From assembly GCA_037447605.1 (NCBI GenBank), contig CM074811.1, positions 2,790,001 through 2,854,000 on the forward strand: a stretch of DNA of 64,000 bases. Reading direction: 5' to 3'. Source of the DNA: Zygnema circumcarinatum SAG 698-1b. Taxonomy: Eukaryota; Plantae; Zygnematophyceae. Positions 14,811 to 60,875 of this stretch are shown one piece after another. The position numbers were made by a program, and so were the translations under genes. The notes under the pieces were generated by a model. It worked only from the letters and a program-made list of their open reading frames with translations, did not search any database and was not told the DNA's origin. Position 1 is the first letter of the stretch; every line of letters begins with the position of its first letter.

Positions 14811-15411
14811 CTTCAAAACCATATATTTTACACAATTTGCTGTCAACGTTCACATAACGCTACATTATCTACATTATCATTTTCAAAATCTTTATCTTTA
14901 CGGTCATTCAATCTACCATCGTTTTCATGCAGCATTCATTTCACGATGGCGACACACCCCTCACGATGGGAACGCCCTAAAATGCATCAATCATAAAAAC
15001 AAAAGCTCAAACGCGAAAAAAACCACCCCCGAAGTACTCACAAATTACCCTTCTTTTTTCTTCTCTTGTTTATTGTTCCTTCTGTTGAAGGAAAGGAAAA
15101 TGGCATTGATCTCACGATGGCGAGGCCATCAAATGTACATGGACAAAATCAGCATGGGGAAGGAACCACGAGGAACTGGTCGCAAAGGACCTATTGAAGG
15201 ACCTGTTGAAGGCCTACCATTCAGCAAGAAAGAGCAGGGCCTGTTGAACGAACGGACACATCCGTCCGACCGACCGTTGGGTTGGTAACGCTCGGTTGTA
15301 CGGTATCATGAAGACCGTACTGTACGGACTACGAGCTCATAGAGCTGCCATGGCTTTTGGGCTTCATTTTCCCCAACGTCCGCATACTGTACAACTCAAA
15401 AGGTGCACTCA
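14811..15411. repeat. Dispersed ~600-bp repeat, copy 1 (direct copy at 25444-26122); probable non-autonomous TE relic
   Basis: Aligns by eye with 25444-26122 over its whole length at roughly 80-85% identity. Shared strings include taacgctacattatctacattatcattttc, ggcattgatctcacgatggcgaggccatcaaatgta and catttccccaacgtccgcat-like sequence. Confidence 0.85.
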
Positions 15412-15937
15412 TGTAGTGTACAATAGGGGTATAGGATAACGTAGTACACTTGATGGTCCTTAGCTTGTGTCGGCGGTCCTTGGTAGATTCGGTCACAGTC
15501 TGAACAGTGCACTAGAGCGCTGTTCTCAGTGGGAAGACGATCGGGTTTGAATAGGACACGTGGAGGGCGGCGATAGGCCGAGTCACCAGTGGAGTCCGCT
15601 TAGTATGATAAGTGTTGGTCATTCACGTGGCGCGCGACGATAGGTCGCGCGGCTGCGAGTTAGCTTAGTACGGATTATTCGAGGCGCGAAGGAGCGCGGA
15701 AGGCTCGGAGCGACGGAGGAGGTTTCGATCCGAGGTTTCGGTACGGACACTCCCATCTCCATGGCGGCCTTTCGAGCTGAGCTCCCGTGCGGTGCGGAGC
15801 GAACTCCAGAAGGCGCGGAGCGACCTTGGCGACATGGAGGTGGCACACGGTGGCACGCGGTGGAACGTGGAGTTGCTTCAGTAGCTAGTATTTAGTTTTC
15901 TTTGTGCATATTTTTAGTTAACCCTTAGAACCTTACA
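15412..15937. mobile_element. Possible solo-LTR-like insertion
   Basis: Begins TGTAG exactly where homology between repeat copies 1 and 2 stops, and ends CCTTACA (TG...CA, 4-bp terminal inverted match). It is GC-rich and non-coding. No target-site duplication or PBS was found. Confidence 0.25.
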
Positions 15938-16057
15938 CCTTGCTCGTGGTGCTGAGTGTAGAGGTCTGCTGTATGGGCAGCAGTAGATAGGCGTGCTGGG
16001 CAGAGAATTAGGAATCAGCTGCGGGCTGAGTTTCATTGTAAAACCCTTCCTATTTAT

Positions 16058-16853
16058 TTCCGCTTCTTTGATTGTCCCGGAGAAAGGTCATGTGAGGATT
16101 CCTGGGTGGGTGGAAAGGTGATGTTTGACGATTGTCTTGCTGGCGGTTGATGGTTTGTTGCTTTTTCGGAAAGCACTGCGGCTCAGAGTACAATACTGAT
16201 TGGTTCGTGTTTCGTTTATGGGTTCCGTGGCCCGTTCTGGTATCGCTTTTGTCTGGGATCAGTTCATGTTTAAGCTGTTGCTGAAAAACTGCTTTGATTG
16301 TTGATGTTTATGGACCAGTTCTTTCTCTCTCTCTCCCTCTCGCTCTGTCTCTCTCTCTCTAACTCAGCAGTTGTGGGGGATGTCCTTGCCAGGGGGTTGT
16401 CTGCAGAAGTTAGCGGAGGTATTGATAGCCATAAGGGATGAAAGAGCATGTCAGGATGTTGCAAGGCAGACGCTTGCTCTGTGCCCGGCACACCCACGTG
16501 CAGCACAAATCAAGTCCACCATTGATTTACATTTGACATGTGGTGCATCAGATGAACATAGTACGAGAGAGCAACCGAATGAGTACGGTTCCTTAACTTC
16601 AAAAGTGAAGGGGAGGGATAATGCATCTCATTCAGATAGGAAGTTGAAGATGCATGTTGGTAAGAACGAAAGAGGGATAAGAAATGGAGAGGAAAAATCT
16701 GCTAATGCTTCAGTCAGAGCTGGACAGCAGAGCAATAATGAACGCAGCATTGGCGATGTAGGAGGAGACAGGGTTGAGCATAGAAACGAGTACAGGGAAA
16801 CCGTGGTCAAGGTGAGGCAGCCGACGCTGACACATAGAGGTTTGGATGGTTAG
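16058..16853 (+). pseudogene. Partial duplicate of CABIN1 (3' part of intron 5 plus first 456 nt of exon 6), truncated by TAG
   Basis: 16058-16848 matches 28269-29078. The exon part 16393-16848 differs from 28623-29078 at about 11 positions by hand count. Homology ends abruptly at tttggatg, followed by an in-frame TAG (16851-16853). No upstream CABIN1 exons are copied. Confidence 0.9.
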
Positions 16854-17873
16854 CGTGGTTGGTCGCTGGCTTAGTCGACCAACGCTGGTGACGTGACATG
16901 ACGTGACATGACGTGACTTGACTGACTCTCCCTTTCTCGCATTCTGCTCCGAACAGATCGACCCGCCGGGCTGCAGACCAAAATGAAGATGACAATGTTC
17001 CGACTTCTGACCAAACACAGCTCACAACATCTCTTGGCATCATTTTCAACTCATCACATATCCTCGATAGAGGCGATCATGGTCTGCTACCCAACCAAAG
17101 AGAGCGATCGACTGTTTGCATAACACCGCAATGCCAACAAGAACCGAAAGCCGAAGACGAACTATCCATCCATCCCCAAAGCGTGTCTTTATGCATCCCT
17201 TGTGCATGCCACTGCCATGGTGCGTCCGCTCCCTCATCTGCCGTGCCTGTGCAGGTACGCGCACTACTGGAAAGCCATGATAAGTTTGACCGCCTCGTCC
17301 TCTGAGAGTGCAAAGGAGGGAGGAGAGGCGTCACGCGCCCCATGAGCCGCTCTCGCATGCGACAAAAGTCGCATGCCTATTCGCACTCGCTAAGGCCGCG
17401 GTCAGTCGGGTGTTGTGTCGTCGCGCAGACCCCGATCCATCGCTTCAAGGCATGCCTGCACGCAGAGGAAACCGTCAGGACCAGGCCGGTGAAGGAAGGT
17501 GAATCTTGAAAGAGTGGGGGAAAACAACTGGAGGAGCATGAAAAGAATCCGTATTTGAATGCAACGAATGGCCTACGTAGGAATTTGATGCAATAAGATA
17601 ACTCTTAGTGTCTTGTGAAGAGGATCATAACGGATCTCTCGTAAGAAAAAAACTAACTTCCATCAGATAGCCTCATGATAACAAAGCAAGTAGTTCAAGT
17701 TGAACGATTGTGCAGAGTCGAATCCAAACATTCCAAAATGATCAGAAGAAAGACAGGAAATAGACTGCAACAGTAAGCAGCAGCAGCCATAGGAGGTGTC
17801 AAGGGACAAGGCGAAGAGTACCAGCATCGGTAACGGGAGGAGGGGCTCAAGGAGAACGGCTCGGAGGGGGACG

Positions 17874-20800
17874 TCAAGGAGGGGGTCGACGGCTGGGAGG
17901 AGGCTTACGTGGAGGGGGACTTTTCGAAGGGGGCCGAGGACGGGGAGGAGGGGATCGTGAAGCTGCAAGAATGCAGGGCATTGTGTGAGTTCCCGTTCAT
18001 AATTAAAAGTGAACTCATGTCTTCCATAGCTAACATATTCTAATCAAAACACGTCCTTATAAACGTTCTGGGAGGATGCAGAACGAAATGAAAACCCATT
18101 CAAACCGCATTCAGTGTGCTCTAACAGCAACGACAGTGTAAAGTCGATAGTTTCCACAGCTTATGCCACACTTTACTTTTCCTTTCCTGCGAGAATCTAA
18201 AAGCAGCAGGTTGCAACTCACCACACGTGCCCGACGTCAGTGCATATCCCTTGTCGCATGTACACGTGGCCGTGTCGTACCCGCACGTGCCGCGGCCCCC
18301 GCACGCTCCCTCGGGAGACCCGCTCTGGCAGAAGGCCGCGCACTTTTGCGGAGATTTCTGCTTCTTAGGGGTTTTAGGGGCGCCACATCCTGTGATATTA
18401 CGAAAAATGCAGTTGCTGTTGAGATTGAGTGGGCAATACGATTTCCCAGACGCTGTAAGTTTGATTGGCCCGGAGAAGTAGTTGTATTGGATCTCCAGGT
18501 CCACTTCGTTATCGGTCGCAAGAGTTATGGAGCCAGTCAACTTGTTGTTGTTTAACTGCCTGTTGACATCAACGGTGGCGCGTTAGAGAGAGTGGGAGGA
18601 GGCTTCCCTAAGATCTAAAACCTTAAAACCTAAGCCCTTACCCTAATCCGTAAAATCGAAACACTACATTCTGGAAAATGACGTCCAATCTCTCGCATGC
18701 ATGACTGAGCATTATTTTGCGTCAAAAAAACCAGCACCGTGACAGAAGTGAACAAAGCGAAACCACGATTGATAAAACCATGAGATAATTTCTCATGCAA
18801 ACGCGAAATTAATGTAATAGTGTGCGAGGTAAAAGTGCTTTTCGCCAAGAACCAAAAAAATTCAAACTGCAAATACAACGTTATCATTGCAGCGGTGCTT
18901 ACAGGTACTCCAGTCGGGTGAGTTTAGAGATGAAGCCGGACACTCTCCCCTCCAGTTTGTTATTGCCCAGGTACCTACAGACATAGATAACGACAAAAAA
19001 CTCAACGAGAAGGATTAGGTTGGTTTTGATCTGAACAAAATTTCGAACCAAATAAGCCATGCAACTCCACGTTTAAAGTCCGTGGAAACATGCGGCCTTT
19101 AGCATGCATGCGTAAGGCCGCATGTGGGCATGCACGCACGCATGCATGCATGCGCGACCTATGGCGGATAAACTAGCATTCACTATCACTGGCATTCCTC
19201 TGTCTGGAATTTCTATCGCTTTCATGTCAGATTTATTGAGAAAAATGATGAAAAAACAATGATGTCAGCTTCACAAGGTTGCCGATAGAATCCGGGATAG
19301 ACCCCATCAGGGAATTACCAGATAAGCGTCTGCCAAAAATAAAAAAAAAAGGCACTGAATAAACATGCTTCCGCGACTGGCATTTCTGTCACTGGCATTC
19401 CCCTGTCTGGAATTTCTATCACTATCATTTCAGATTTGAAAGGAAAAATACTTACAATGTTTGCAGATTCGCAAAGTTGCCGATAGCATCCGGGATCGAC
19501 CCAGTTAAGGAATTATTAGACAAGTCTCTGCCAGAAAATAGAAAGAAAGGCATCACGAATCTGGCCCATGTTTGCAGCAAAAGCAATAGTGATATGGGAA
19601 GAATGCTCAAGTGAATGCGGCGGATTTTTAGGTTTTCAGATTTATGGGGAAAAATACTTACAAGTAGAACAGATTCGCAAGGCTGCCGATAGTATGCGGA
19701 ATGGACCCCGAGAGAAAATTACCAGAGCAGCTTCTGCCAAAATTAAAAAAAATAGGAACTGAATAAACATGCTGCCATGACTAGCATTTTTGTCACAGGG
19801 CTTCCTCTGTCTGAAATTACTATCACTTTCATTCCAGATTTATGGGGAAAAATACTTACAATGCGAACAGAGTCGAAACGTTGCCGATAGAATCGGGGAT
19901 AGACCCCGTTAGTGAATTAGAATCCAAATACCTGCCACAAATATACAAAGACACTGAATAAAGTTGCTGCCGCGACTGCCATTTCTATCACTAGCATTCC
20001 TCAGTCTGGCATATCTATCAATTCCATTTCAAATTTAAGTGGGAAAACACTTACAAGTAGTTCAGATTTGCAAGGTTGCCGATAGAATCCGGGATAGACC
20101 CCGTCAGGGAATTATTAACCAAGTCTCTGCAAAAAAATACAAGAAAGGCATCACGAATCTGGCCCATGTTTGCAACAAAAGTGAAAGTGACGTGGGAAAA
20201 ATGGTCAAGTGAATGCGGCGGATTTTTAGGTTTTCAGATTTATAGGGCAAAATACTTACAATGCTTGCAGATTCGCAAGGTTGCCGATAGCATGCGGGAT
20301 AGATCCCAAGAGGAAATTACCAGAGCAGCTTCTGCCAAAATTAAAAAAAATAGGAACTGAATAAACATGCTGCCATGACTAACATTTCTGTCACAGGCAT
20401 TCCTGTCTGAAATTTCGATCACTTTCATACCAGATTTATGGGGGAAAATAATTACAATATGGACAGAGTCGAAAGGTTGCCGATAGAATCGGGGATAGAC
20501 CCCGTTAGTGAATTATCCACAAAGTATCTGCCAAAAAACAAAAAGAAAGGGCACTGAATAAACATGCTGCCACGACTAGCATTTCTATAACTGACATTCA
20601 TCTGTCTGACAATTTTATCCTTTAATTTCAGATTTCTGCGAAAAAATACTTACATTTCTTTCAGATTCGCAAGGTTGCCGATAGAATGCGGGATAGACCC
20701 CGAGAGGGGGTTATGACTCAAGTATCTGCCAAAAAAAAAAAAAGTGACATTGATTAAACATGCTGCTCCGACTAACATTTCTATCACTGACATTCCTCTG

Positions 20801-22256
20801 TCGGCCATTTCTATACCTTTCATTTCAGATTTATTGAGGAAAAAACTTACATGTATTGCATATTCAAAAGCTTGACGATAGAATCCGGGATAGACCCCGT
20901 TAGGGCATTATCCACCAAGTCTCTGCCCAAAAATAAAAAAAAAGGGCACTGAATAAACATCCTGCCAAGAATACCATTCCTAACATTGGCATTCCTCTGT
21001 CTGGCATTTCATATCACTTTCATTTCAGATTTAAGGGGAAAAATACTTACAATTCTTGCAGATTAGCAAGGTTGCCGATAGAATCGGGGATAGACCCCGT
21101 CAGGGAATTGCCATACAAGTTTCTGCAAAAAAAAAAAAAAATTAGGCACTGCATAAACATGCTGTCCTGACTAGCATTTCTATCACTGGCATTCCTGTCT
21201 GGAATTTCTAATCACTTCACTTCAGATTTACGGGTAAACATACTTACAATGATTGCAGATTCGCAAGGCCGCCGATAGAATCCGGGATAGACCCAGCGAG
21301 GGAATTATCACCCAAGTCTCTGCCAAAAAATAGACAAGAAAGGTATCACAAATCTGGCCCATGTTTGCACCAAAAGCAAAAGTGACGTGGAAAGAATGCT
21401 CAAGTGAATGCGGCGAATTCGAGCAGCGACAACACGTCCATGCGCGTGACGTGACACGTGACCAGGACGCGAGCACACACGCACTGGCAGCTCCGCTTCT
21501 CCGGAAGTTGCAGTGCTTCAGTGCTTCTACAAATTTTGCATGTCCCAACATCTGAGCCCTCCCTACCACAGTGTACACACAAACATGCATCGAAAGCATC
21601 ATTATGGAACTTTATGGAAGAGAACCCCTTACAAGGATGTCAGCTTTGCCAGGTTGCCGATGGCAGGTGAAATGCTTCCTCCTACGTTGCGGGCCCTTAA
21701 AAATCTGCATAAGGCAGGTTAGCAGCGAGAGCGTTAGAAGAAGAAAGGTCCGCGGGAAGTAGGACTGCTCCGGGCAGCCCTTTTCAGTCCCGTTCCGTGG
21801 GGTCATCTTCCCGTAGACCCTCCTCGTAGCTTCGGGCTGCAGTTCAGGAATCACAAGCGGTGTTCAGTCAAAGTGTAGCTCACAGCTCAATAACGCGCCC
21901 GCTTGCGTCGCATCTGATGTCACTCCATTTGCTGCAGAGGCGGTTACTCGACTTCCAGGAGGTGAGCTGCTGTCCGTTGTTGAATGCCGCTTTGACAGCG
22001 AGAAGAGTGTTCCCTGCGCCCAAGCGCGAGCAGATGCAGGATTGGATTGAGGCCGCGGTCCGCTTCAAAAAGCACAAACAGAGGCCCCGCCGCGGGCAGG
22101 CCGCCTCTCCCCTTCTTCCATAGAGGGCGGGCGGGCGGGCCGCGGCGGCTCACTGTCTCGCGGGTCGATGGCCTGAGCGGCGGCTTCGCGCGGGGCGGCG
22201 GCGGCGGCAAAGAGGAGGAGCGCCGCCGCGAGAGAGAGAGACCGCGCGCGCGCCAT
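17874..22256 (-). CDS. Secreted leucine-rich-repeat protein (signal peptide, LRRNT, ~14-15 plant-type LRRs, Cys-rich EGF-like module, Pro-rich tail); 17 exons, ~531 aa
   Basis: All exons are phase-compatible. E1 22154-22256 MARARSLSLAAALLLFAAAAAPREAAAQAIDPRD. E2 21884-22013 (R)NTLLAVKAAFNNGQQLTSWKSSNRLCSKWSDIRCDASGRVIEL. 72-nt LRR exons: E3 21633-21704, E4 21248-21319, E5 21051-21122, E6 20851-20922, E7 20654-20725, E8 20456-20527, E9 20260-20331, E10 20055-20126, E11 19860-19931, E12 19662-19733, E13 19456-19527, E14 19258-19329, E15 18903-18974. E16 18222-18559 QLNNNKLTGSI...QYNYFSGPI...CAAFCQSGSPEGACGGRGTCGYDTATCTCDKGYALTSGTC. E17 17874-17962 SRSPPPRPRPPSKSPPPRKPPPSRRPPP-TGA. All splice sites are AG/GT. 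Total 1596 nt. Confidence 0.9.
18617..18646. repeat. Short degenerate telomere-like (CCCTAA/CCTAAAA) tract in intron 15 of the LRR gene
   Basis: aaaaccttaaaacctaagcccttaccctaa. Confidence 0.35.
19170..21415 (-). repeat. Tandem array of 11 ~200-bp units, each one intron (~123-134 nt) plus one 72-nt LRR exon
   Basis: The motif gttgccgatagaatccgggatagacccc (reverse complement encodes GSIPDSIGN) recurs about every 196-206 nt from ~19280 to ~21270. It is flanked each time by cttac (donor GTAAG on the - strand, with two exceptions) and ctgc plus an A-run (acceptor plus polypyrimidine tract on the - strand). Confidence 0.95.
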
Positions 22257-23434: not shown

Positions 23435-23612
23435 TAAAGGTCTCTCTCTCCTCTACTCTTTATCCTCTGGTCTCTCACTCTCTCTCCTCTACTCTCACTC
23501 TATTACTCTCTTTCTCTTTCTCCTTTACTCTCTCTACTCTCTCTCCTTTACTCTCACTTTGCTCTCTCCTCTGCTCTCCTTTAGTCTTCTCTCCTTTGCT
23601 TTCACTCTACTC

Positions 23613-23653
<41 letters not shown>

Positions 23654-23670
23654 TGCTTTGCTCTCTTTTT
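23435..23670. repeat. CT-rich low-complexity tract with (CT)n microsatellite (~23606-23650)
   Basis: Directly visible pyrimidine-rich run. Confidence 0.9.
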
Positions 23671-25443: not shown

Positions 25444-26122
25444 CTTCAAAACCATATATATTTTAATCAATTTTGCTCTCAAACTTCACGTAACGCTACA
25501 TTATCTACATTATCATTTTCAAGATCTTTATCTTTACGGTCATTCATCTTTTTCATGTTTAAGGGCTAGAGATTAGGGTTCAGGGGTTAGGGTTCAGGGT
25601 CAGGGGTTAGCACTCATTTCACGATGGCGACGCACCTCACGAGGAACGCCATGAAATGCATCAATCATAAAAACAGAATCTAAAACGTGAAAAAAACCAC
25701 CCCCGAAGAACCCATAAATAACCCCTTCTTTTTTCTTCTCTTGTTTCTTGTTCCTCCTGTTGAAGGAAAGGAAAATGGCATTGATCTCACGATGGCGAGG
25801 CCATCAAATGTATATGGGCAGAATCAGTATGGGAAAGGAACCACGAGGAACTGGTCGCAAAGGACCTATTGGACCTGCTGAAGCAACGGGGAAACTTTCA
25901 TTGAACTCGCGATTCAGCATTCAGCATTCAGCCCACCATTCAGCAAGCATGAGCAGGCCCTGCTGCACGGACGGACACATCCGTCCGACCGTTGGGTCTG
26001 TAACGGTCGGTTGTACGGTACCTATAGACCGTACCGTACGGCATACGAGCCCATAGAAAGCTGCCATGGCTTTGGCCATCATTTTCCCCAACGTCCGCAT
26101 GCAACACAAAAGGTGCAGTCAT
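25444..26122. repeat. Dispersed ~600-bp repeat, copy 2 (direct copy of 14811-15411), upstream of CABIN1
   Basis: See copy 1. This copy also carries a telomere-like tract at 25561-25611. Confidence 0.85.
25561..25611. repeat. Degenerate telomere-like (TTAGGG/TTCAGGG) tract inside repeat copy 2
   Basis: gattagggttcaggggttagggttcagggtcaggggttag; absent from the aligned position in copy 1. Confidence 0.55.
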
Positions 26123-26461
26123 ACAAGCAGGCTGAGGGAGAAGCAAAGCAAGGCGTAAGGACATGCATACAGGACTGTGTTTTACAGCGCCTACTACAGT
26201 ATTTTGAAGTAGGAAATTTGAGGCATAGTATTGTTCTCCCAGTCTTTGTGGAGCTTTCCTGCTCTCTCAGGTTGGATGTTGTTTTTTCTCTGTTTTTGGT
26301 GTTGTATCAGATAGTTAGTTCGACAGCAGGTGCTTGCTGGAGTTCATGGTGCCAGCTGGTACTTGAAAGTTGAAGCCTTGCTCTCCACGGCTATGCTCTG
26401 GACACTGAAGGGAACAAGTTATCGATTTTGAGCGCTTGCAACGCACCACATCGCAATCAGC

Positions 26462-29400
26462 ATGGTAAGTGAAGCAAGCGCTTGATATGTGAATCCCTGA
26501 TTGCTGCTGCTCTAGTTCCAGCATGCCACATGAGGAGGGCATTAAAGCTTTGTTATTGGTGAGGCTAATCTACGACTGTTGAAGCAAGGGTATACAAACA
26601 AGCAAGGGTCTTGGGAAGCCTTATGCCAAAGCCATTGAAGTTTTTGACACTTCAATCATTATAGTGCCGGTGGTTCAAGCATTGCACAATTCAATTCATA
26701 TTAAAGTTCTGAACATTGTTCATTCTTCGCTTGATGACAGTTGTCCATTGCGGCAATAAATGATGAAGCTGTTGCCAATCGCTGGGAACCTTTGGCTCCG
26801 ACAAAGGAGGCTCAGGTGAGGAAACTTGTGTTCTTAACTCTCGGTTTGAAGCCACTAGGTTGTCTGCTTAAAAAAAGAAAACGGTCTATTCAACTCGAAT
26901 GGTGGAGAAAGTGGAAGAGAGGATGTGCATCCTTTTATTGTCTTTGAATTTTCATGATATTCATATACTCAGGCTTACGCGAATAGCAGAAGGAGAAGAT
27001 ATTCTTACATTTTATGTCGTCTGTCTGGTATTCGACTACCGGCACCAGGAGACAATGCTTCTTACCATGTATCAAGAGGCCCTACGCCAAATGCAAGAAG
27101 GAAAGCTGCACGAAGCGCAAGCATCTTTGGAGTCCGTTTTGTCCAACCCACTTTGTCAAGAAGCAAAGGCAAGTACAGAGTATCGTTCTTTTATTTTGAA
27201 ATTCACTTTTTGGTTGGTAAATTTAAAGCCTCAAACGGTTCATGCTGTTCTCGTTGGCCTTCAATAATGCGAGATATTTCAGGCCTCTCCGAGTTGTTAT
27301 TATGGATATAATCGCAGGTCAATATTTGGCTGGAACAATTCGTTATATAGTGAGCATAAGTTAATTTTAGTGTCTACTTTTCTGGTGCAGGGAGACCAAC
27401 TTGGTTCAGCAAATAGTCTATTACAACTAAGGTGCCTGATGCTACTCTCCCTTAGATTCCCATGTTTTCCCCAAGTAGGTGCAATTGTCGGAAAAAGGAT
27501 GCTTAGAAATGTTTGAATCAGTGAATAGGATAGTTCATCGTCGACAGGAACTTATGACAACGGGGGAGGAGTTTGAGTCAAACTCTCCTGTGGCAGGTTC
27601 AGACGATCAATTTGCTCGTTACCCCGTAGATCCTAACGTTTTTTTTTTTCCCTCTCATCAATATTGATGATCTATGCAATCTTTAAAACACTTTCTTCAG
27701 AATCATCCGAGTTTTCGTTACCTTAGGTCACCTCTTTTTATCGCTGCCTGAATCATCGGGTTGGTCTGTGCTGGAGTAGGTTCTTGGCACTGAAGAATCT
27801 GGGAGAGATCTTCAGGCAAAGAGGGGCAGTACATTCAGATGACTCGATCCGCTGCTACCTTGAGGCAGCGTCCATTGATGGCAGCGACGTCGTTCTCTGG
27901 CATCGGCTGGGGATCCAAGCATGCCAAGCTGGCCGACTAAGCATTGCAAGGAGCGCATTTGAACAGGGTGTGAGGTGTAGCCCGAAACATTGTAAGAGTT
28001 AAATCCACCTTCACTATAGGTTTATGGTTCACGGTATTTTGCTCTCTTCATCATTTCTGGTGTGTGCATTCATGCATGCACTGGATGAACGGGACCAGGT
28101 GTATGACGCCTTTTTGGCGGTAAAGTTATGGAGGGATGTCCTAGTGGATAGCTATAGCAACTCGACAGGAAGGTTAGGATGTTTCAGCCTGAAATTTCTG
28201 CCATTTTGCTACATGTATTTCACCCTTGAAAGTTTGAACGCGACTGGTAAATATATCCATGGTTGACATTCCGCTTCTTTGATTGTCCCAGAGAAAGGTC
28301 ATGTGAGGATTTCTGGGTGGGTGGAAAGGAGAGGTTTGGAGCTTGTCATGCTGGCGGTTGATGGGTTTGCTGTTTTTTCGGAAAGCACTGCGGCTCATGA
28401 GTACAATATTGGTTGGTTTGTGTTTCATTAATGAGCTCCGTCGCCCCGTTCTGGTATCGCTTTTGTCTGGGATCAATTCATGTTTAAGCTGTCGCTGAAA
28501 AACTGGTCGTTAGCTTTGTTTGTTGATGTTTATGGTCCAGTTTTCTCTCCATCTCTCCCTCTGTCTCTCTGTCTCTCTCTCTCTCTCCCTAACTCAGCAG
28601 TTGCGGGGGATGTCCTTGCCAGGGGGTTGTCTGCAGAAGTTAGCGGAGGTATTGATAGCCATAAGGGATGAAAGAGCATGTCAGGATATTGCAAGGCAGA
28701 CGCTTGCTCTGTGCCCGGCTCACCCACGTGCAGCACAAATCAAGTCCACCATTGATTTACATTTGACATGTGGTGCATCAGACGAACATACTATGAGTGA
28801 GCAACAGAATGAGTACGGTTCCTTAACTTCAAAAGTGAAGGGGAGGGATAATGAATCTCATTCAGACAGGAAGTTGAAGATGCATGCTGGTAAGAACGAA
28901 AGAGGGATAAGAAATGGAGAGGAAAAATCTGCTAATGCTTCAGTCAGAGCTGGACAGCAGAGCAATAATGAACGCAGCATTGGCGATGTAGGAGGAGACA
29001 GGGTTGAGCATAGAAACGAGTACAGGGAAACCGTGGTCAAGGTGAGGCAGCCGACGCTGACACCTAGAGGTTTGGATGTACTTGAAGCACAACTGATTGT
29101 CTCTTCAAGGGAAACTGGGGTGGAGGGAGTCCAAATAACAGGAGCAGAGAACGTAGAACAGTTTAGCCACAATGCCCATTTAGCTGAGTTGCAACTGGAC
29201 AATGCGTCATGGCCCGCTATAGTGACTGCAGTTTACCAATATCTGGAGGATGGAGTGGAGAGAGGAGCTGGAAAAAGGGGATTGAATGACGATCTGGAAG
29301 CAACTGTAAAGTTCGGAAGTTTTTGTAAAAAAAGTGAGCATGTAGGAGATCGCTTGATCAGCGGTATTTGTCAACCGACGAACGCTCCTGGTGATAGAAA

Positions 29401-32400
29401 AGGAGCGAGTGTAGAGAAGGAGAAAGTGAATGAAGTCGGGTCGATACTCGCCAGAAGTCATTTTGCTTCAGAAGTGGTAGGAGGCAAAACAATTAGGGAA
29501 TGTGAACCCGGCCATAGTGTTTGTGAGGGTGACTTAGTGCCTCAGCTCCGCCAGAACGGATTTGAAGTAGACCCGGAGAGAAGGAGACTAGATTTTTTTG
29601 ACGAAAAGGACGTGAACGAGGGAACCGTTGAACATACATTAAGTGAAGGGCCTGCAGCGGACAGAGAAAAGGTGGAAGTGGATGCTGTCTTAATAAGTGA
29701 AGGAAAGAACGTGGTGGACGTGCAAGAGGTCCGAAGTCAGCAGCCGGGGTTTGAATCCATTAGTGAAGGACATACTACCGTAAACCTACAGTCTAATGAA
29801 CTTGTTAAAGTGACAGTAGTGCCGGGTAAACATCATGAGGAGGTAGGTATGGATATCCAGCAGACTCTTGAATCAAAAAACATAGACAGCATTGACATCC
29901 AGGGAGCCTGCTCATTAGGGACTCCAGCGAGAGTCCATTCCATCGAAGTGGGTGTGGCAGAAGATTGGCATTACATGAGGGAAGGAACAAATGATGGAGT
30001 ATTGGATTCTGAGCGACGGAGGGCCAGAGGTGTGAGGAGTGTTAGTTGGGGAGGGATAGAGGGGAGTGCAAGAAGAACACGACGACAGGTGAGAAACAAG
30101 GAATTGGAAAAGGAAAGGGAGAGAGAGGAAGCTCAAAGGAGGGAGAATGAGCTGAAAACTTCTGTTGGAAGGGTACAAAAGGTACTCCAACCATTCATAA
30201 CACGAAGTGATGGGGTAGAGAACAGGCTGGAGATAGAGGCGAAAGAGATGAAACAGTATCCGTCAGGCACCACTCCCGCAGCTGTGCTTGAGCTGAATGG
30301 GATAGATGCAGCTAGTAATCAGCAGAGGACTGAAAATGTGGACACTGAAGAGGCTGGCTTTAGATCTTCAACAGATCCTGGAGGATCTAGGGATATAATG
30401 AGCTTTAAGGTACAACATGATGAACGGAGCAGTCTAATGGGAGTTGCAGGATCTTTACTCGAAGCTTTTGCTGCTCAATCTGAAGTAGTTATCAGCAGAA
30501 AGACTGCAACAGAAATCGCCAGTATTGACAAAAGGATCAGATATTCTGCGGACGAGAGGAGTCTCACTTGCACCGTGTACTTGGCAGAAATTTATATAAG
30601 CTTAGCTGCAACTGCTCATTCTGGAGAGCAAGACTCATTTCTAGAGAATGCTGCCTTTTGGTTAAATAAGTCAGTACAAGCTTTCGCGTCGCTAACTGCT
30701 TCGGCAGGAAGTGGTGCTTCGGAACAAGGAGGCGAAACAAATACCACTGATGAGCAGAGTTGCCCCTCAGTAATCAGCAAACCAGCAGTTGAAAATGACA
30801 AAAAACGGAAGTTCTCCGTTTCAGCAAGCGATGGGATCGACAAAAGTCAATCCGTAAAAAGGACAAGAGCAGCAATTGGAAATTTCGAGGCCTTGAGAGA
30901 GGAGCTTGGGCCTTGTACTGAACTTTTGTTTGGCAACTTCTGGCAAAGACAGGATTTAGATAGCACAAGGGCAACGGCGTGTCGAAATTCAATAGAGACA
31001 AGTAGGGAGATGCTACATGACTGGGAGATTTGGGCACGCTTTTACTGGGCTTATGGGTGCTGGAGCATTCTGATGGGAGAGAGGAAAACAGCAAAAAACC
31101 ATTTTCAGCACTGCCTTGCAGTTCTTGAAAATGCGGATGCTAATTTTATGGCACTTCAGGCCACTTTTGCGACTTGTAACAAAGCAAAGCCTGACAAAGA
31201 TGAGGTAGAGGCGATGGAAGGTGTCTCTGTTCCTGCCAAACAGTTGGATCGTTCAGAGGAGCAGAGTATCAACAATGGGAGTGAAGATCATGATGTGGCT
31301 CATGTGGAAGGCCCATGGACAAGGACTGGTTTTTTGAACATGCATGAGGGGGGACTGGATTCTTTAGATTGTAGACCTAAACGGCTCTCAGTAATCCGCC
31401 TTGGAGCATGCCAGGTGGACAATGTCATCTCATATACTGCTGTACAGGGACAGCTGCTCTGCTTAGACATAGAGGAGTTAGTGGCCATAAAAGCTCCAGT
31501 TATGCTGAATGAAGGAAAGCATCAGGAAATTGTGTCTTTGCTGACACCGGTGTTCTTTCCGGGAAGAGCAAGTAAGTTGCCAGCTTCCAGTCAAGCCCTG
31601 TTCACAAGGGCTTCCGGACAGATGAGAAGACATCCCACGGGAAGAAAGCAGCTCTTGCAGGGATTGAAGCTGCTTGCCAAGGCATGCCTTCAACTGCAGA
31701 TTCCAGATTGGCTGCTTGCCCTCGAATGCCATGAGCAGATTCTTTCGCAGCTTGTTACTCCTATGAAGGAGGAAGAGAGGGCAGAGGGAATAGAGAGCGA
31801 GACGGCTAGGAGATGGACGCTTTGGACAGAAGCGCTGGGGAGAGAGAATGGTGGGTTTGCAGGACTGGCAAGATTTCAATCACGCAGGGAGGATGAGCGT
31901 AAAGTGGAGTTCAATGTAAAGAAGAGGATGGAAGTGGCACGTGCGGTCAATAGATTATGCTGTTGCACTCATAGTTTTTTCCAAAAGGTATGTTCCTTAA
32001 TGAATTTTGCACATTGTAAAGCCTAGCAATATGTTTAGGCATTTCAGTGGTTTATGGAGTGACATTTCTGTTCTGGTATTTTTATTCTCTTGTACTGATG
32101 AGTTACTTGCAGATGCATTACTTTAGTCTCTTCAGCCAAGGCAAATTGAGAAGTAGCCTCTTTTAAGTTTTTCTTCGTCCTTGAAAGGATGTCAATGATG
32201 AATTGACAATTCCTACAACTTGACTGATTGGTCAAGCATAGCATGCTACTTATCTCAATAGGACGCCCACAGGTATGTAGCCTAGTATCGACACGTGTTT
32301 AGCCTAATGTATTCGAGTATATTAAGCATGTAAGGAGATTGATGATGCATACATACTGAGAAGGTGAATTCTTTTCCTGTGCAGGTTCATTCGGACGGTG

Positions 32401-43882: not shown

Positions 43883-46050
43883 ATGGCGGAAGCTCCCTTG
43901 AAGAAGGCCCTGATCAGCGGCGTGACCGGGCAGGACGGGTCCTACCTGACGGAGCTCCTGCTCAGCAAGGGCTACGAGGTGCACGGCATCATCCGGCGGT
44001 CGTCCAACTTCAACACGCAGCGCCTGGACCACATCTACAAGGACCCGCACGTCTCCACCGCCAAGCTCAAGCTCCACTATGGCGATCTGCTCGACTCCTC
44101 CGCCCTCCGCAAGTGGATCGACAAGATTGAGCCAGACGAAGTGTACAACTTAGGCGCGCAGTCTCACGTCGGAGTCTCCTTTGAGAACCCTGAGTTCACT
44201 GCAGATGTGGTGGGCACAGGCGCCCTCCGCCTGCTTGAAGCGGTGCGCACGCATATTGACCACACAGGGCGCAAGGTGAGGTATTACCAGGCCGGCTCCT
44301 CGGAGATGTATGGCGCCACGCCGCCCCCTCAGGACGAGAACACGCTCTTCCACCCGCGCTCGCCCTACGCAGTGGCGAAGGTGGCGGCGCATTGGTACAC
44401 TGTGAACTACCGCGAGGCCTACGGCATGTTCTGCTGCAACGGGATCCTCTTCAACCACGAGTCGCCAAGGCGAGGAGAGAATTTTGTGACCAGGAAGATC
44501 ACACGCGCGCTTGGAAGGATTAAAGTTGGGCTGCAAAAGAAGCTGTATCTCGGGAACTTAAAGGCTTCTCGTGATTGGGGTTTCGCAGGCGACTATGTCG
44601 AGGTGAGGCGCTTTCACTGGATTTGTACTATGCTACCGGCTAATAATAGCTGTGGTTTCTTAGCAATGGTGTTTCTTAATTGAGGCCTGCTGGATCCGAA
44701 TTGACTTGCCATGCAGATCCCTTTCTTTGCTTAATTTCTGTCTCGGCTGGTAAGTTGTGATTTCTGAAGAATTCAGCTTCTAGCTTGAGATCAGCTGGAT
44801 CTGCTTGCAATGGACGAAGGCGGCCTTAGATCTGCTGTCAATGTCGAAAGATTGCGATATTCTTTTCAATTGGGTTTGCTTAAGCGTCGATTCCTCGATT
44901 TAGTGTGGCTGCATTAGATCTGATCTGATTTCTATCATACAGGCTTTGTCGCAGTTAATTGATCTTTTGTTTTCTCTTGTTTGCTTGCTTCTGTTGTATT
45001 TCGCCTATGTTCAATTGGTACAATGTGGCTGCAGTAACTAACACTAACAGTCAATTTGTCAGAATTCAGTACTTGCCTAACATTTACAAAAAAATATTTT
45101 TTAGTAACTTACAAGTTCTCATGGTGTGTCTAATATGTCAGGGCTGTCTTATTTTTTTTTGGTCGGTGTTGGATCTGATGCAGACACCTGCATTCGTACA
45201 CTGCACTAGCTTGAGGTCCCTGGATTTGTTGTTTCTGTTTTGCGCTTTTTTCTTGCTGAAAGTTTCTGGCTCTCACTTATGTTCAGTGTGCTTCAAGTGT
45301 CTGATTGGTATTCTTACTCTCGGTGTTTGATCTTGACAAGGTGTACTGTTTACATTTTAATCTGACTTAGGCTAGGTTTTCGCTTTACAGAAGGAAAAAA
45401 TGCTTTCTTGATTGAGTAACCAGTAATTGAGAGTGCGTTTATCAGTTTTGTTTCAATACGTCATAAGTTCTAAATTATTTTTTATTGTTCGATTGGATGA
45501 TCATGTGGCTATAACTCGCCAAGGTTGATGAGGTTTGCTTCAGCATCAACTTGCAATGTGTGCTTTTCAAGTTTGAGCATGGTGTGGCTGTTTCTTAGCC
45601 AATATTCGAAATTCCTCTTGACCTAACCTGTGAGAATGCGATGAAAAGAATGGTCCGGAACGGCTGCAGATGAATAGAATGGGCTCTGAGTGGTCCCTTG
45701 TGCATGTGCGTGTACAGGGCATGTGGATGATGCTGCAGCAGGATGAGCCCGACGACTATGTGCTCGCCACAGAGGACTCACATACAGTGGAGGAGTTCTT
45801 GATCGAGTCTTTTGGCTATCTTGGCCTTGACTGGAAGGAGCATGTGGAAGTGGACCCGCGCTACTTCAGGCCTTCCGAGGTCGACAACCTCCGGGGCTCC
45901 GCTGCCAAGGCCAAGGCTAAGCTGGGCTGGGAGCCCAAAGTGAGCTTCAAGCAGCTGGTGGCTATGATGGTGGACTCGGATCTGGAGAGGGCCAAGAGGG
46001 AGAAGACCCTGGTGGATGCAGGATACCTTGACCACAACGCCCAACCCTAG
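43883..46050 (+). CDS. GMD: GDP-mannose 4,6-dehydratase (GDP-L-fucose synthesis); exons 43883-44602 and 45718-46050
   Basis: [95 protein letters not shown]|GMWMMLQQ and [11 protein letters not shown] form the complete MUR1/GMD motif set. Confidence 0.97.

Positions 46051-55830: not shown

Positions 55831-60875
<5,045 letters not shown>

Follow-up and report, generated by a model that had tools for sequence, protein, structure and literature searches.

Divergence concentrated in the strand-facing codons of a one-repeat-per-exon LRR array in Zygnema circumcarinatum

Can the exons of a gene diverge faster than the introns that separate them, and, if they do, which of their bases are responsible? 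The question is raised by a locus of the alga Zygnema circumcarinatum SAG 698-1b (Zygnematophyceae), where a minus-strand gene, whose model starts with the ATG at 22256 and ends with the stop codon at 17876-17874, contains an array of short exons (19258-21319) that each encode one leucine-rich repeat (LRR). All positions refer to the window, i.e., the whole stretch of 64,000 nucleotides (nt) that was analysed (assembly GCA_037447605.1, contig CM074811.1, positions 2,790,001 to 2,854,000 of the forward strand). An earlier annotation made from the letters of this stretch (hereafter the sequence-only reading) had proposed that the two copies of a duplicated three-exon block differ more in their exons than in their introns, that the changes cluster at the ligand-facing positions of the repeat, and that diversifying selection and/or micro gene-conversion between exon cassettes, consistent with an arms race, lay behind the pattern. 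We find that five codons per exon, and not whole exons, outrun the introns, and we weigh below what may have driven them.

Where the exons outrun their introns

The array comprises eleven 72-nt one-LRR exons on the minus strand (U1-U11, corresponding to E4-E14 of the gene model), which were recovered as a tandem repeat of period 198 (Tandem Repeats Finder) and by a frame-aware scan, and which lie at 21319-21248 (U1), 21122-21051 (U2), 20922-20851 (U3), 20725-20654 (U4), 20527-20456 (U5), 20331-20260 (U6), 20126-20055 (U7), 19931-19860 (U8), 19733-19662 (U9), 19527-19456 (U10), and 19329-19258 (U11). Each exon is bounded by AG and GT and holds one open frame of 1 base, 23 codons, and 2 bases; the ten array introns (each numbered here after the exon that precedes it) measure 123-134 nt and are all of phase 2, splitting a Leu or Ile codon (TT/A, TT/G, or AT/A). 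As this codon is the central Leu/Ile of the xxLxLxx motif, each ligand-facing strand spans two exons, the upstream one contributing its last two x codons and the downstream one its first three. The x codons considered here are thus positions 1, 3, 4, 22, and 23 of the exon, i.e., the x of xxLxLxx, giving five codons in each of 11 units.

Counts for the three exon pairs of the proposed duplication were reproduced, with 11, 13, and 14 differences of 72 nt for U5/U8, U6/U9, and U7/U10, respectively, as was the identity of ~90-92% for the paired introns (92% for I5/I8 and 90% for I6/I9), and the 40-nt identical core noted for E8 and E11 is indeed the longest identical run between U5 and U8. The claim that exons outpace introns stood as a count (38 of 216 exon bases versus 22 of 257 intron bases; Fisher p = 0.0036) but not as a property of the exon, because only the x codons carry an excess: 21 of the 38 differences fall within 45 x-codon bases, and the other 17 are spread over the remaining 171 bases (9.9%, the same as in the introns).

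The limits of the young duplicated tract (~470 nt) were obtained by a two-change-point likelihood fit to non-x sites only. The tract runs, on the minus strand, from nt 14 of U5 through U6, I6, and U7 to nt 6 of I7 in the first copy (20049-20514), and from nt 14 of U8 through U9, I9, and U10 to nt 6 of I10 in the second (19450-19918), and non-x sites are 91.4% identical inside it versus 77% outside. The support interval of its left edge extends from nt 111 of I4 to nt 26 of U5, and a fit with the x sites included picked out 68 perfectly matching nt across the boundary between I5 and U6. In the pair U5/U8, the 5' x codons account for 7 of the 11 differences; they lie at or outside this edge and are therefore not safely counted as change that followed the duplication.

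Within the tract the same concentration was found under these stricter limits. Mismatches amount to 16 of 36 bases (44%) in x codons, 15 of 167 (9.0%) in other exon bases, and 22 of 263 (8.4%) in introns; x codons differ from introns at p = 2.6e-7 (Fisher), other exon bases do not (p = 0.86), and whole exons against introns gave p = 0.027. Of the 12 x codons in the tract, seven differ; all seven changes alter the amino acid, and six involve two or three bases, in agreement with the clustering of multi-base codon changes at x positions described by the sequence-only reading. Among other codons and intron triplets, such multi-base differences were rare (1 of 53 and 3 of 85, respectively; p = 7e-5).

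The contrast extends across the array. Over all 11 units, x codons had a mean pairwise diversity per base of 0.54, the remaining exon bases 0.175, and whole exons 0.25, versus 0.20 in introns (computed on eight ordinary introns), so that x codons exceed introns (p = 6e-7) and whole exons do not differ from them significantly (p = 0.18). A triplet-level test on eight units, in which a multi-base event is counted once and which is therefore robust to such events, still returned 5.4 distinct states at x codons versus 3.0 in intron triplets (p = 0.001-0.004). Overall, the anatomy of the array and the contrast in rate are direct observations: x codons change at two to five times the pace of neighbouring introns and silent sites.

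Duplication history of the array

The comparison above depends on the two triplets being copies of one another, and the duplication history can be read directly from the introns. Intron I6 (20127-20259, minus strand) is a hybrid, in which a head of ~35 nt of the ordinary array-intron type is followed by a tail of ~97 nt copied from I0, the intron before U1, whose own 3' tail was placed by alignment at 21320-21416 (minus strand). Intron I9 (19528-19661, minus strand) is of the same hybrid type and occupies the same relative place in the second triplet, and the two align with 118 matches, 15 mismatches, and 1 gap; the exons that follow I0, I6, and I9 (U1, U7, and U10) are also mutually related. 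As both triplets carry the hybrid intron at an equivalent position, the triplet duplication is real, and the I6/I9 hybrid is both a shared derived marker of the duplication of a three-cassette block and a trace of unequal exchange.

Beyond the tract, the positional partners no longer resemble each other above the rest of the array. Introns I7 and I10 are only 81% identical, which equals the background level (identity between array units is ~75-83%), and I10 is 92% identical to I1. That I10 matches I1 and not I7 indicates a later conversion across 1.8 kb. Similarly, U7 is nearer to U1 and U2 (12 differences each) than to U10 (14 differences). The sequence of events that we propose is that the array grew by unequal exchange between cassettes consisting of a 72-nt exon and an intron of ~125 nt, that one such exchange would have created the hybrid intron, and that the three-cassette block carrying it was then duplicated, probably at a time corresponding to ~8-9% neutral divergence, before a later conversion may have given I10 its likeness to I1.

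Selection, exchange, and competing explanations

What, then, made the x codons change so quickly? Pairwise estimates by the Nei-Gojobori method (55 unit pairs) put the ratio of nonsynonymous to synonymous divergence (dN/dS) at 2.3 for the x codons of the beta-strand, at 1.3 for the other x positions, and at 0.23 for scaffold codons. Across the array, the scaffold codons have a silent divergence of 0.24, which is close to the intron diversity of 0.20, and the introns are therefore not specially conserved. A high silent divergence of the exons had been named by the sequence-only reading as an observation that would count against it; array-wide it was not found (0.24 versus 0.20), and the young tract leans slightly towards it.

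Codon models of the GY94 type, implemented as custom maximum likelihood with fixed site partitions on two trees, pointed in the same direction. With a shared rate, the dN/dS ratio omega at x codons (omega_X) was 5.0-8.1, and omega_X = 1 was rejected (likelihood-ratio test statistic (LRT) 27-45, p = 2e-7 to 2e-11), next to an omega of ~1.0 for the other x positions and of 0.2 for the scaffold. When the x codons were given a free rate multiplier, meant to absorb a mutation or conversion hot spot, omega_X remained at 4.9-8.0 (LRT 7.0-13.0, p = 0.008 to 0.0003), and the synonymous rate multiplier at x codons was ~1.0. Allowing double and triple hits in addition gave an unstable omega_X of 6.6-38 (LRT 5.8-11.0, p = 0.016 to 0.0009). 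The ratio at x positions that the sequence-only reading had proposed to estimate thus lies above 1 in all three model variants, and its claim of diversifying selection is upheld as far as an excess of amino-acid-changing substitutions at these positions is concerned. On these models we consider diversifying selection at the putatively ligand-facing codons likely.

The x-codon variants also appear to be young. Where units share an amino acid at an x codon they almost invariably share the codon as well (GAC in 4 of 4 at x1, GAT in 3 of 3 at x4, and CAA in 5 of 5 at x22), which argues that the variants are recent and shared by descent. Codon bias was rejected as the source of the shared codons, since the same residue is coded differently by position, with GAC at x1 and GAT at x4 and position 13. 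Ancient retained diversity at the x codons was likewise rejected, given the identical codons per residue and the synonymous multiplier of 1.0.

The alternative that deserves most space is neutral cassette shuffling, in which, after the block duplication, short conversion tracts from other cassettes overwrite parts of the copies and no selection on the recent changes is needed; as donor cassettes differ mostly at x codons, neutral exchange would by itself raise the mismatch there. Much of the fine structure suits it. Not only are six of the seven differing x codons in the tract multi-base, but both states of the two 3-base differences between U6 and U9 also occur in other units, and the terminal codon pairs are as the sequence-only reading listed them, with CAA/TTC and GCA/TAC present in all four combinations. 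The likeness of I10 to I1 over its positional partner points the same way, as do the first 25 nt of I9, which equal I8 and not I6, and the 32-36% (about one third) of informative site pairs that are incompatible. This incompatibility shows no dependence on distance, however, and the recombination test of the pairwise homoplasy index (PHI) type was not significant among the units of the array (p = 0.12-0.71). Nor is the change in U6/U9 evenly placed: the 3' x-codon pair differs at 6 of 6 bases with identical sequence flanking it on both sides, whereas x1, x3, and x4 are unchanged (0 of 9 bases). Among the states of the differing x codons in the young tract, 5 of 14 are unique within the gene and came from mutation or from donors outside the window. 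The proposed micro gene-conversion has circumstantial evidence in the mosaic introns and the four codon combinations and no statistical support from the PHI-type test; on this evidence, micro-conversion between cassettes is plausible. As a complete explanation, shuffling meets the difficulty that it cannot create the diversity that it moves, and the nonsynonymous excess (omega 5-8) is accompanied by a synonymous rate that is normal (multiplier 1.0). The young pair alone cannot separate selection from shuffling; selection is favoured because the replacement excess across the whole array occurs at this normal silent rate, and we regard neutral shuffling as unlikely to account for the pattern without it.

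Two further explanations would locate the anomaly elsewhere. Introns, not exons, might be the odd partner, kept alike because splicing constrains them, because they embed an RNA, or through homogenisation biased towards introns, with the x codons representing old diversity retained by purifying selection. The first ~11 and last ~20 intron columns are indeed low in diversity, and silent exon differences in the young tract (~0.21) are higher than intron differences (0.084), but the array-wide agreement between scaffold silent divergence and intron diversity given above runs counter to this. Moreover, the introns had no Rfam match at E < 0.3 (best E-value 0.32), the consensus fold of seven of them reached only -5.4 kcal/mol without covariation, a continuous duplicated tract cannot skip six bases whose flanks are identical on both sides, and the identical codons used for identical x residues are unlike ancient retained diversity, which together make this explanation improbable. 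More improbable still is an artefact or a dead locus, that is, small-sample noise, mis-assembly of repeats, a decaying satellite, or a pseudogene. Although U11 has a poor donor (GTTTTT) and the whole-exon contrast with introns is not significant array-wide (p = 0.18), a single open frame runs with consistent phases through the 13 LRR exons and both flanking exon sets, reading on from an exon into an array intron meets an in-frame stop at once (except in I11, where it comes nine codons later), and scaffold codons have an omega of 0.2. Collapse of repeats is unlikely in view of units that differ by at least 8%, and six DNA sequencing runs, which come from three studies, contain 60-84% of the words sampled from the stretch. 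A further ~13 runs of unspecified kind contain 13-20% of these words, a share that would fit spliced RNA.

Several points weigh against selection as the driver and temper the estimate given below. The tests rest on 11 units of five x codons, i.e., 55 codon cells, and these units are related and recombining, which breaks the assumption of a single tree and can bias omega upwards. When minimum events are counted (distinct amino acids versus distinct synonymous codons), the ratio of replacement to silent change at x codons reaches only ~1.4 times what neutrality would predict, and in the young tract silent differences (~9 of 43 sites, the ~0.21 cited above) exceed the 8.4% of the introns, which narrows the contrast. 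An extreme model of neutral overwriting, in which all divergence of the young pair derives from other cassettes, gives an x-codon mismatch of at most 29%, an upper bound not far under the 44% observed (p ~0.03, with adjacent bases not independent). Finally, the evidence for selection comes from repeats within one gene, and the nearest relatives of its C-terminal module are at most 42% identical.

Taken together, we favour, with a probability of about 0.65, an array built by unequal exchange and block duplication and then subject to diversifying selection at the repeats' concave face, partly fed by exchange. Under this explanation, introns, silent sites, and other non-binding bases would have drifted at one common pace since the duplication and scaffold amino acids would have been held by purifying selection, while the five strand-facing x codons of each repeat may have gathered amino-acid-changing and mostly multi-base replacements under diversifying selection on the binding face, probably supplied in part by short templated exchanges between cassettes. 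Among these elements, an omega above 1 at x codons is a result of the models, and we infer the contribution of conversion to x-codon change from the mosaic structure described above. A ligand-binding role of the x residues is predicted, and the terms "arms race" and "immune receptor" apply here by analogy only.

The division of each strand between two exons invites a more far-reaching idea, namely a combinatorial system, germline or even somatic, for secreted LRR binders, in which the symmetric phase-2 72-nt cassettes would be more than a relic of duplication, and exon skipping, alternative choice of cassettes, or frequent templated micro-exchange would each make new strands at the junctions. 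We consider this decidedly improbable; if true, it would correspond, in the green lineage, to what has been suggested, though not proven, for the ROCO genes of brown algae.

The gene, its surroundings, and comparable systems

The array belongs to a multi-exon gene that, from its translation, is predicted to encode a plant-type LRR protein with ~14 LRRs and an LRRNT_2 cap. The continuity of the frame was followed through each exon and each junction codon, and Pfam searches were run per single exon. Exon 1 (22154-22256, minus strand; 34 codons and 1 base, read from the sequence) starts with the ATG and a basic segment followed by an Ala/Leu-rich hydrophobic stretch that by eye resembles a signal peptide, has a GTGAG donor after it, and had no match in the Pfam scan. 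Exon 2 (21884-22013, minus strand) encodes the plant LRR N-terminal cap, as seen in its translation and in a Pfam match to LRRNT_2 (PF08263; 28.9 bits versus a curated cut-off of 20.7). It is followed by an irregular first 72-nt LRR exon, U0 (E3; 21633-21704, minus strand), defined by its open frame and AG/GT bounds, and downstream of the array lies a diverged 72-nt LRR exon, U12 (E15; 18903-18974, minus strand). U0 to U12 are thus thirteen consecutive 72-nt exons with phase-2 introns throughout, which is a one-repeat-per-exon cassette layout. All 11 array units fit the 24-residue consensus LxxLxLxxNxLxGxIPxxIGxL, and a single 23-residue exon aligns in register with all repeats of solved plant ectodomains, among them GSO1 and FLS2 (~29 repeats each), which assigns the repeats to the plant-specific 24-residue LRR class.

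Two details of the array units deserve mention. The donor of U11 (19250-19258, minus strand) reads GTTTTT rather than GTAAGT, and the start of the intron behind it resembles a damaged array intron; U11 may be skipped, and a join of U10 to U12 would keep the frame. Both U6 (20260-20331) and U9 (19662-19733), on the minus strand, carry a Cys codon (TGC) at the second Leu of the LxL core, where the strand reads L-S-C-S-G-N; Cys is unusual at this buried scaffold position and is kept in both copies.

The 3' part of the gene consists of two further exons. E16 (18222-18559, minus strand) encodes the final LRRs and a Cys-rich, EGF-like module as judged from its translation; EGF models match it below their cut-offs only (Pfam scan), a word search for related proteins under a length filter returned nothing, and an exhaustive search of 1.84 billion representatives returned 22 distant relatives that are at most 42% identical. 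One of these, 36% identical, ends an intronless LRR gene of 556 residues (GCA_027943415.1, L001:3001-4671; GCA_027943385.1, L003), and the combination of LRRs with a Cys knot therefore also exists without the exon-cassette layout. E17 (17874-17962, minus strand), read from the sequence, encodes a short proline-rich tail of 28 residues with two SPPP motifs, followed by the stop, and had no Pfam match. The downstream exons thus provide an EGF-like knot, the tail, and a stop, with no transmembrane helix or kinase, and the product is not an LRR receptor-like kinase; no kinase-like open reading frame (ORF) was found at 10-18 kb on the minus strand, and the Pfam scan and the translations of the modelled exons revealed no ROC-COR GTPase module. 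The protein is probably secreted, and we predict that the gene is spliced and expressed. Proline-rich coding runs on in other frames past the modelled stop (17800-17910, minus strand), and a strong donor-like GTAAGC lies within the last exon at ~17908; the gene may in fact end elsewhere than modelled.

The gene is flanked on both sides by a direct segmental duplication that consists of three pieces of 83-93% identity (14931-16848 versus 25609-29078). Its copy at 28.3-29.1 kb is the start of an ORF of 1168 residues (28520-32026, plus strand); the one at 16.1-16.8 kb resembles a duplicate that has been truncated. Short degenerate telomere-like repeats of the TTAGGG/TTTAGGG type occur at 25573-25599 and at 18600-18650 (minus strand), the latter within the intron that separates the last LRR exon from the Cys-rich one. 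Further away, an ORF of 266 residues at 43883-44683 (plus strand) resembles by eye the large first exon of a GDP-mannose 4,6-dehydratase, with an NAD-binding GxxGxxG start and conserved motifs. The window also contains two 10-N assembly gaps (56049-56058 and 58505-58514) and long CT-rich microsatellites that translate as (SL)n (59399-59743 and 23441-23666).

For the study of LRR proteins, the locus offers an internally dated case of diversification of a binding surface, in which introns and silent sites serve as a built-in neutral clock. For LRR receptors of plants, the pattern, its positions, and its interpretation are all textbook knowledge, and the gene alone opens no new question. In land-plant LRR genes such as Cf-4/Cf-9, Xa21, and PGIP, the residues of xxLxLxx are hypervariable and dN exceeds dS at solvent-exposed positions; these genes share the 24-residue repeat and the LRRNT_2 cap, and exchange between repeats and paralogues contributes to their variation. 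Their LRR domains lie mostly in one large exon, and selection has been demonstrated between alleles or paralogues with known pathogen ligands, whereas the comparison made here is between repeats of one gene. The order of parts recalls the LRR-extensins (LRX), which consist of a signal peptide, an LRR domain, a Cys-rich hinge, and a proline-rich end; unlike in LRX, the tail is only 28 residues long, with its two SPPP motifs, and there is no long extensin domain.

Our literature search returned no paper on such arrays in streptophyte algae, and the closest layouts were found in distant lineages. Ciliate LRR genes of Tetrahymena consist of arrays of 90-bp exons separated by introns of ~250 nt, which encode a 30-residue repeat with an extreme phase-2 bias, are associated with a retrotransposon, and have expanded clonally through unequal crossing-over (PMC6564038). 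The array studied here resembles them in its uniform exon-plus-intron units, its phase-2 introns, a junction codon common to neighbouring exons, and its fast evolution, and differs in its plant-type 24-residue repeat and 72-nt exons.

Also close in architecture are the LRR-ROCO genes of the brown algae Ectocarpus and Saccharina, in which one-LRR exons of 72 nt (24 residues) with phase-2 introns undergo exon shuffling, site models detect positive selection at residues of the concave face, and both alternative splicing and remnants of LRRs in antisense orientation within introns have been described, the whole being proposed as a source of varied binders (PMC3341825; PMC11378527). The Zygnema gene shares with them the 72-nt one-LRR exons, the phase-2 introns, and the tandem duplication of exons. 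LRR-ROCO proteins are cytosolic stramenopile proteins with a ROC-COR GTPase, whereas the present gene encodes a green-lineage LRR protein of secreted type with an LRRNT_2 cap and an EGF-like end; it works like the ROCO arrays and is not a member of the ROCO family. In LRR-ROCO genes the LxxLxLxxN strand lies inside one exon, whereas here the intron cuts through the binding strand itself and divides it between two exons, a structural difference between the two systems. The gene thus adds a green-lineage, putatively secreted, plant-type case to the one-repeat-per-exon arrays of brown algae and ciliates.

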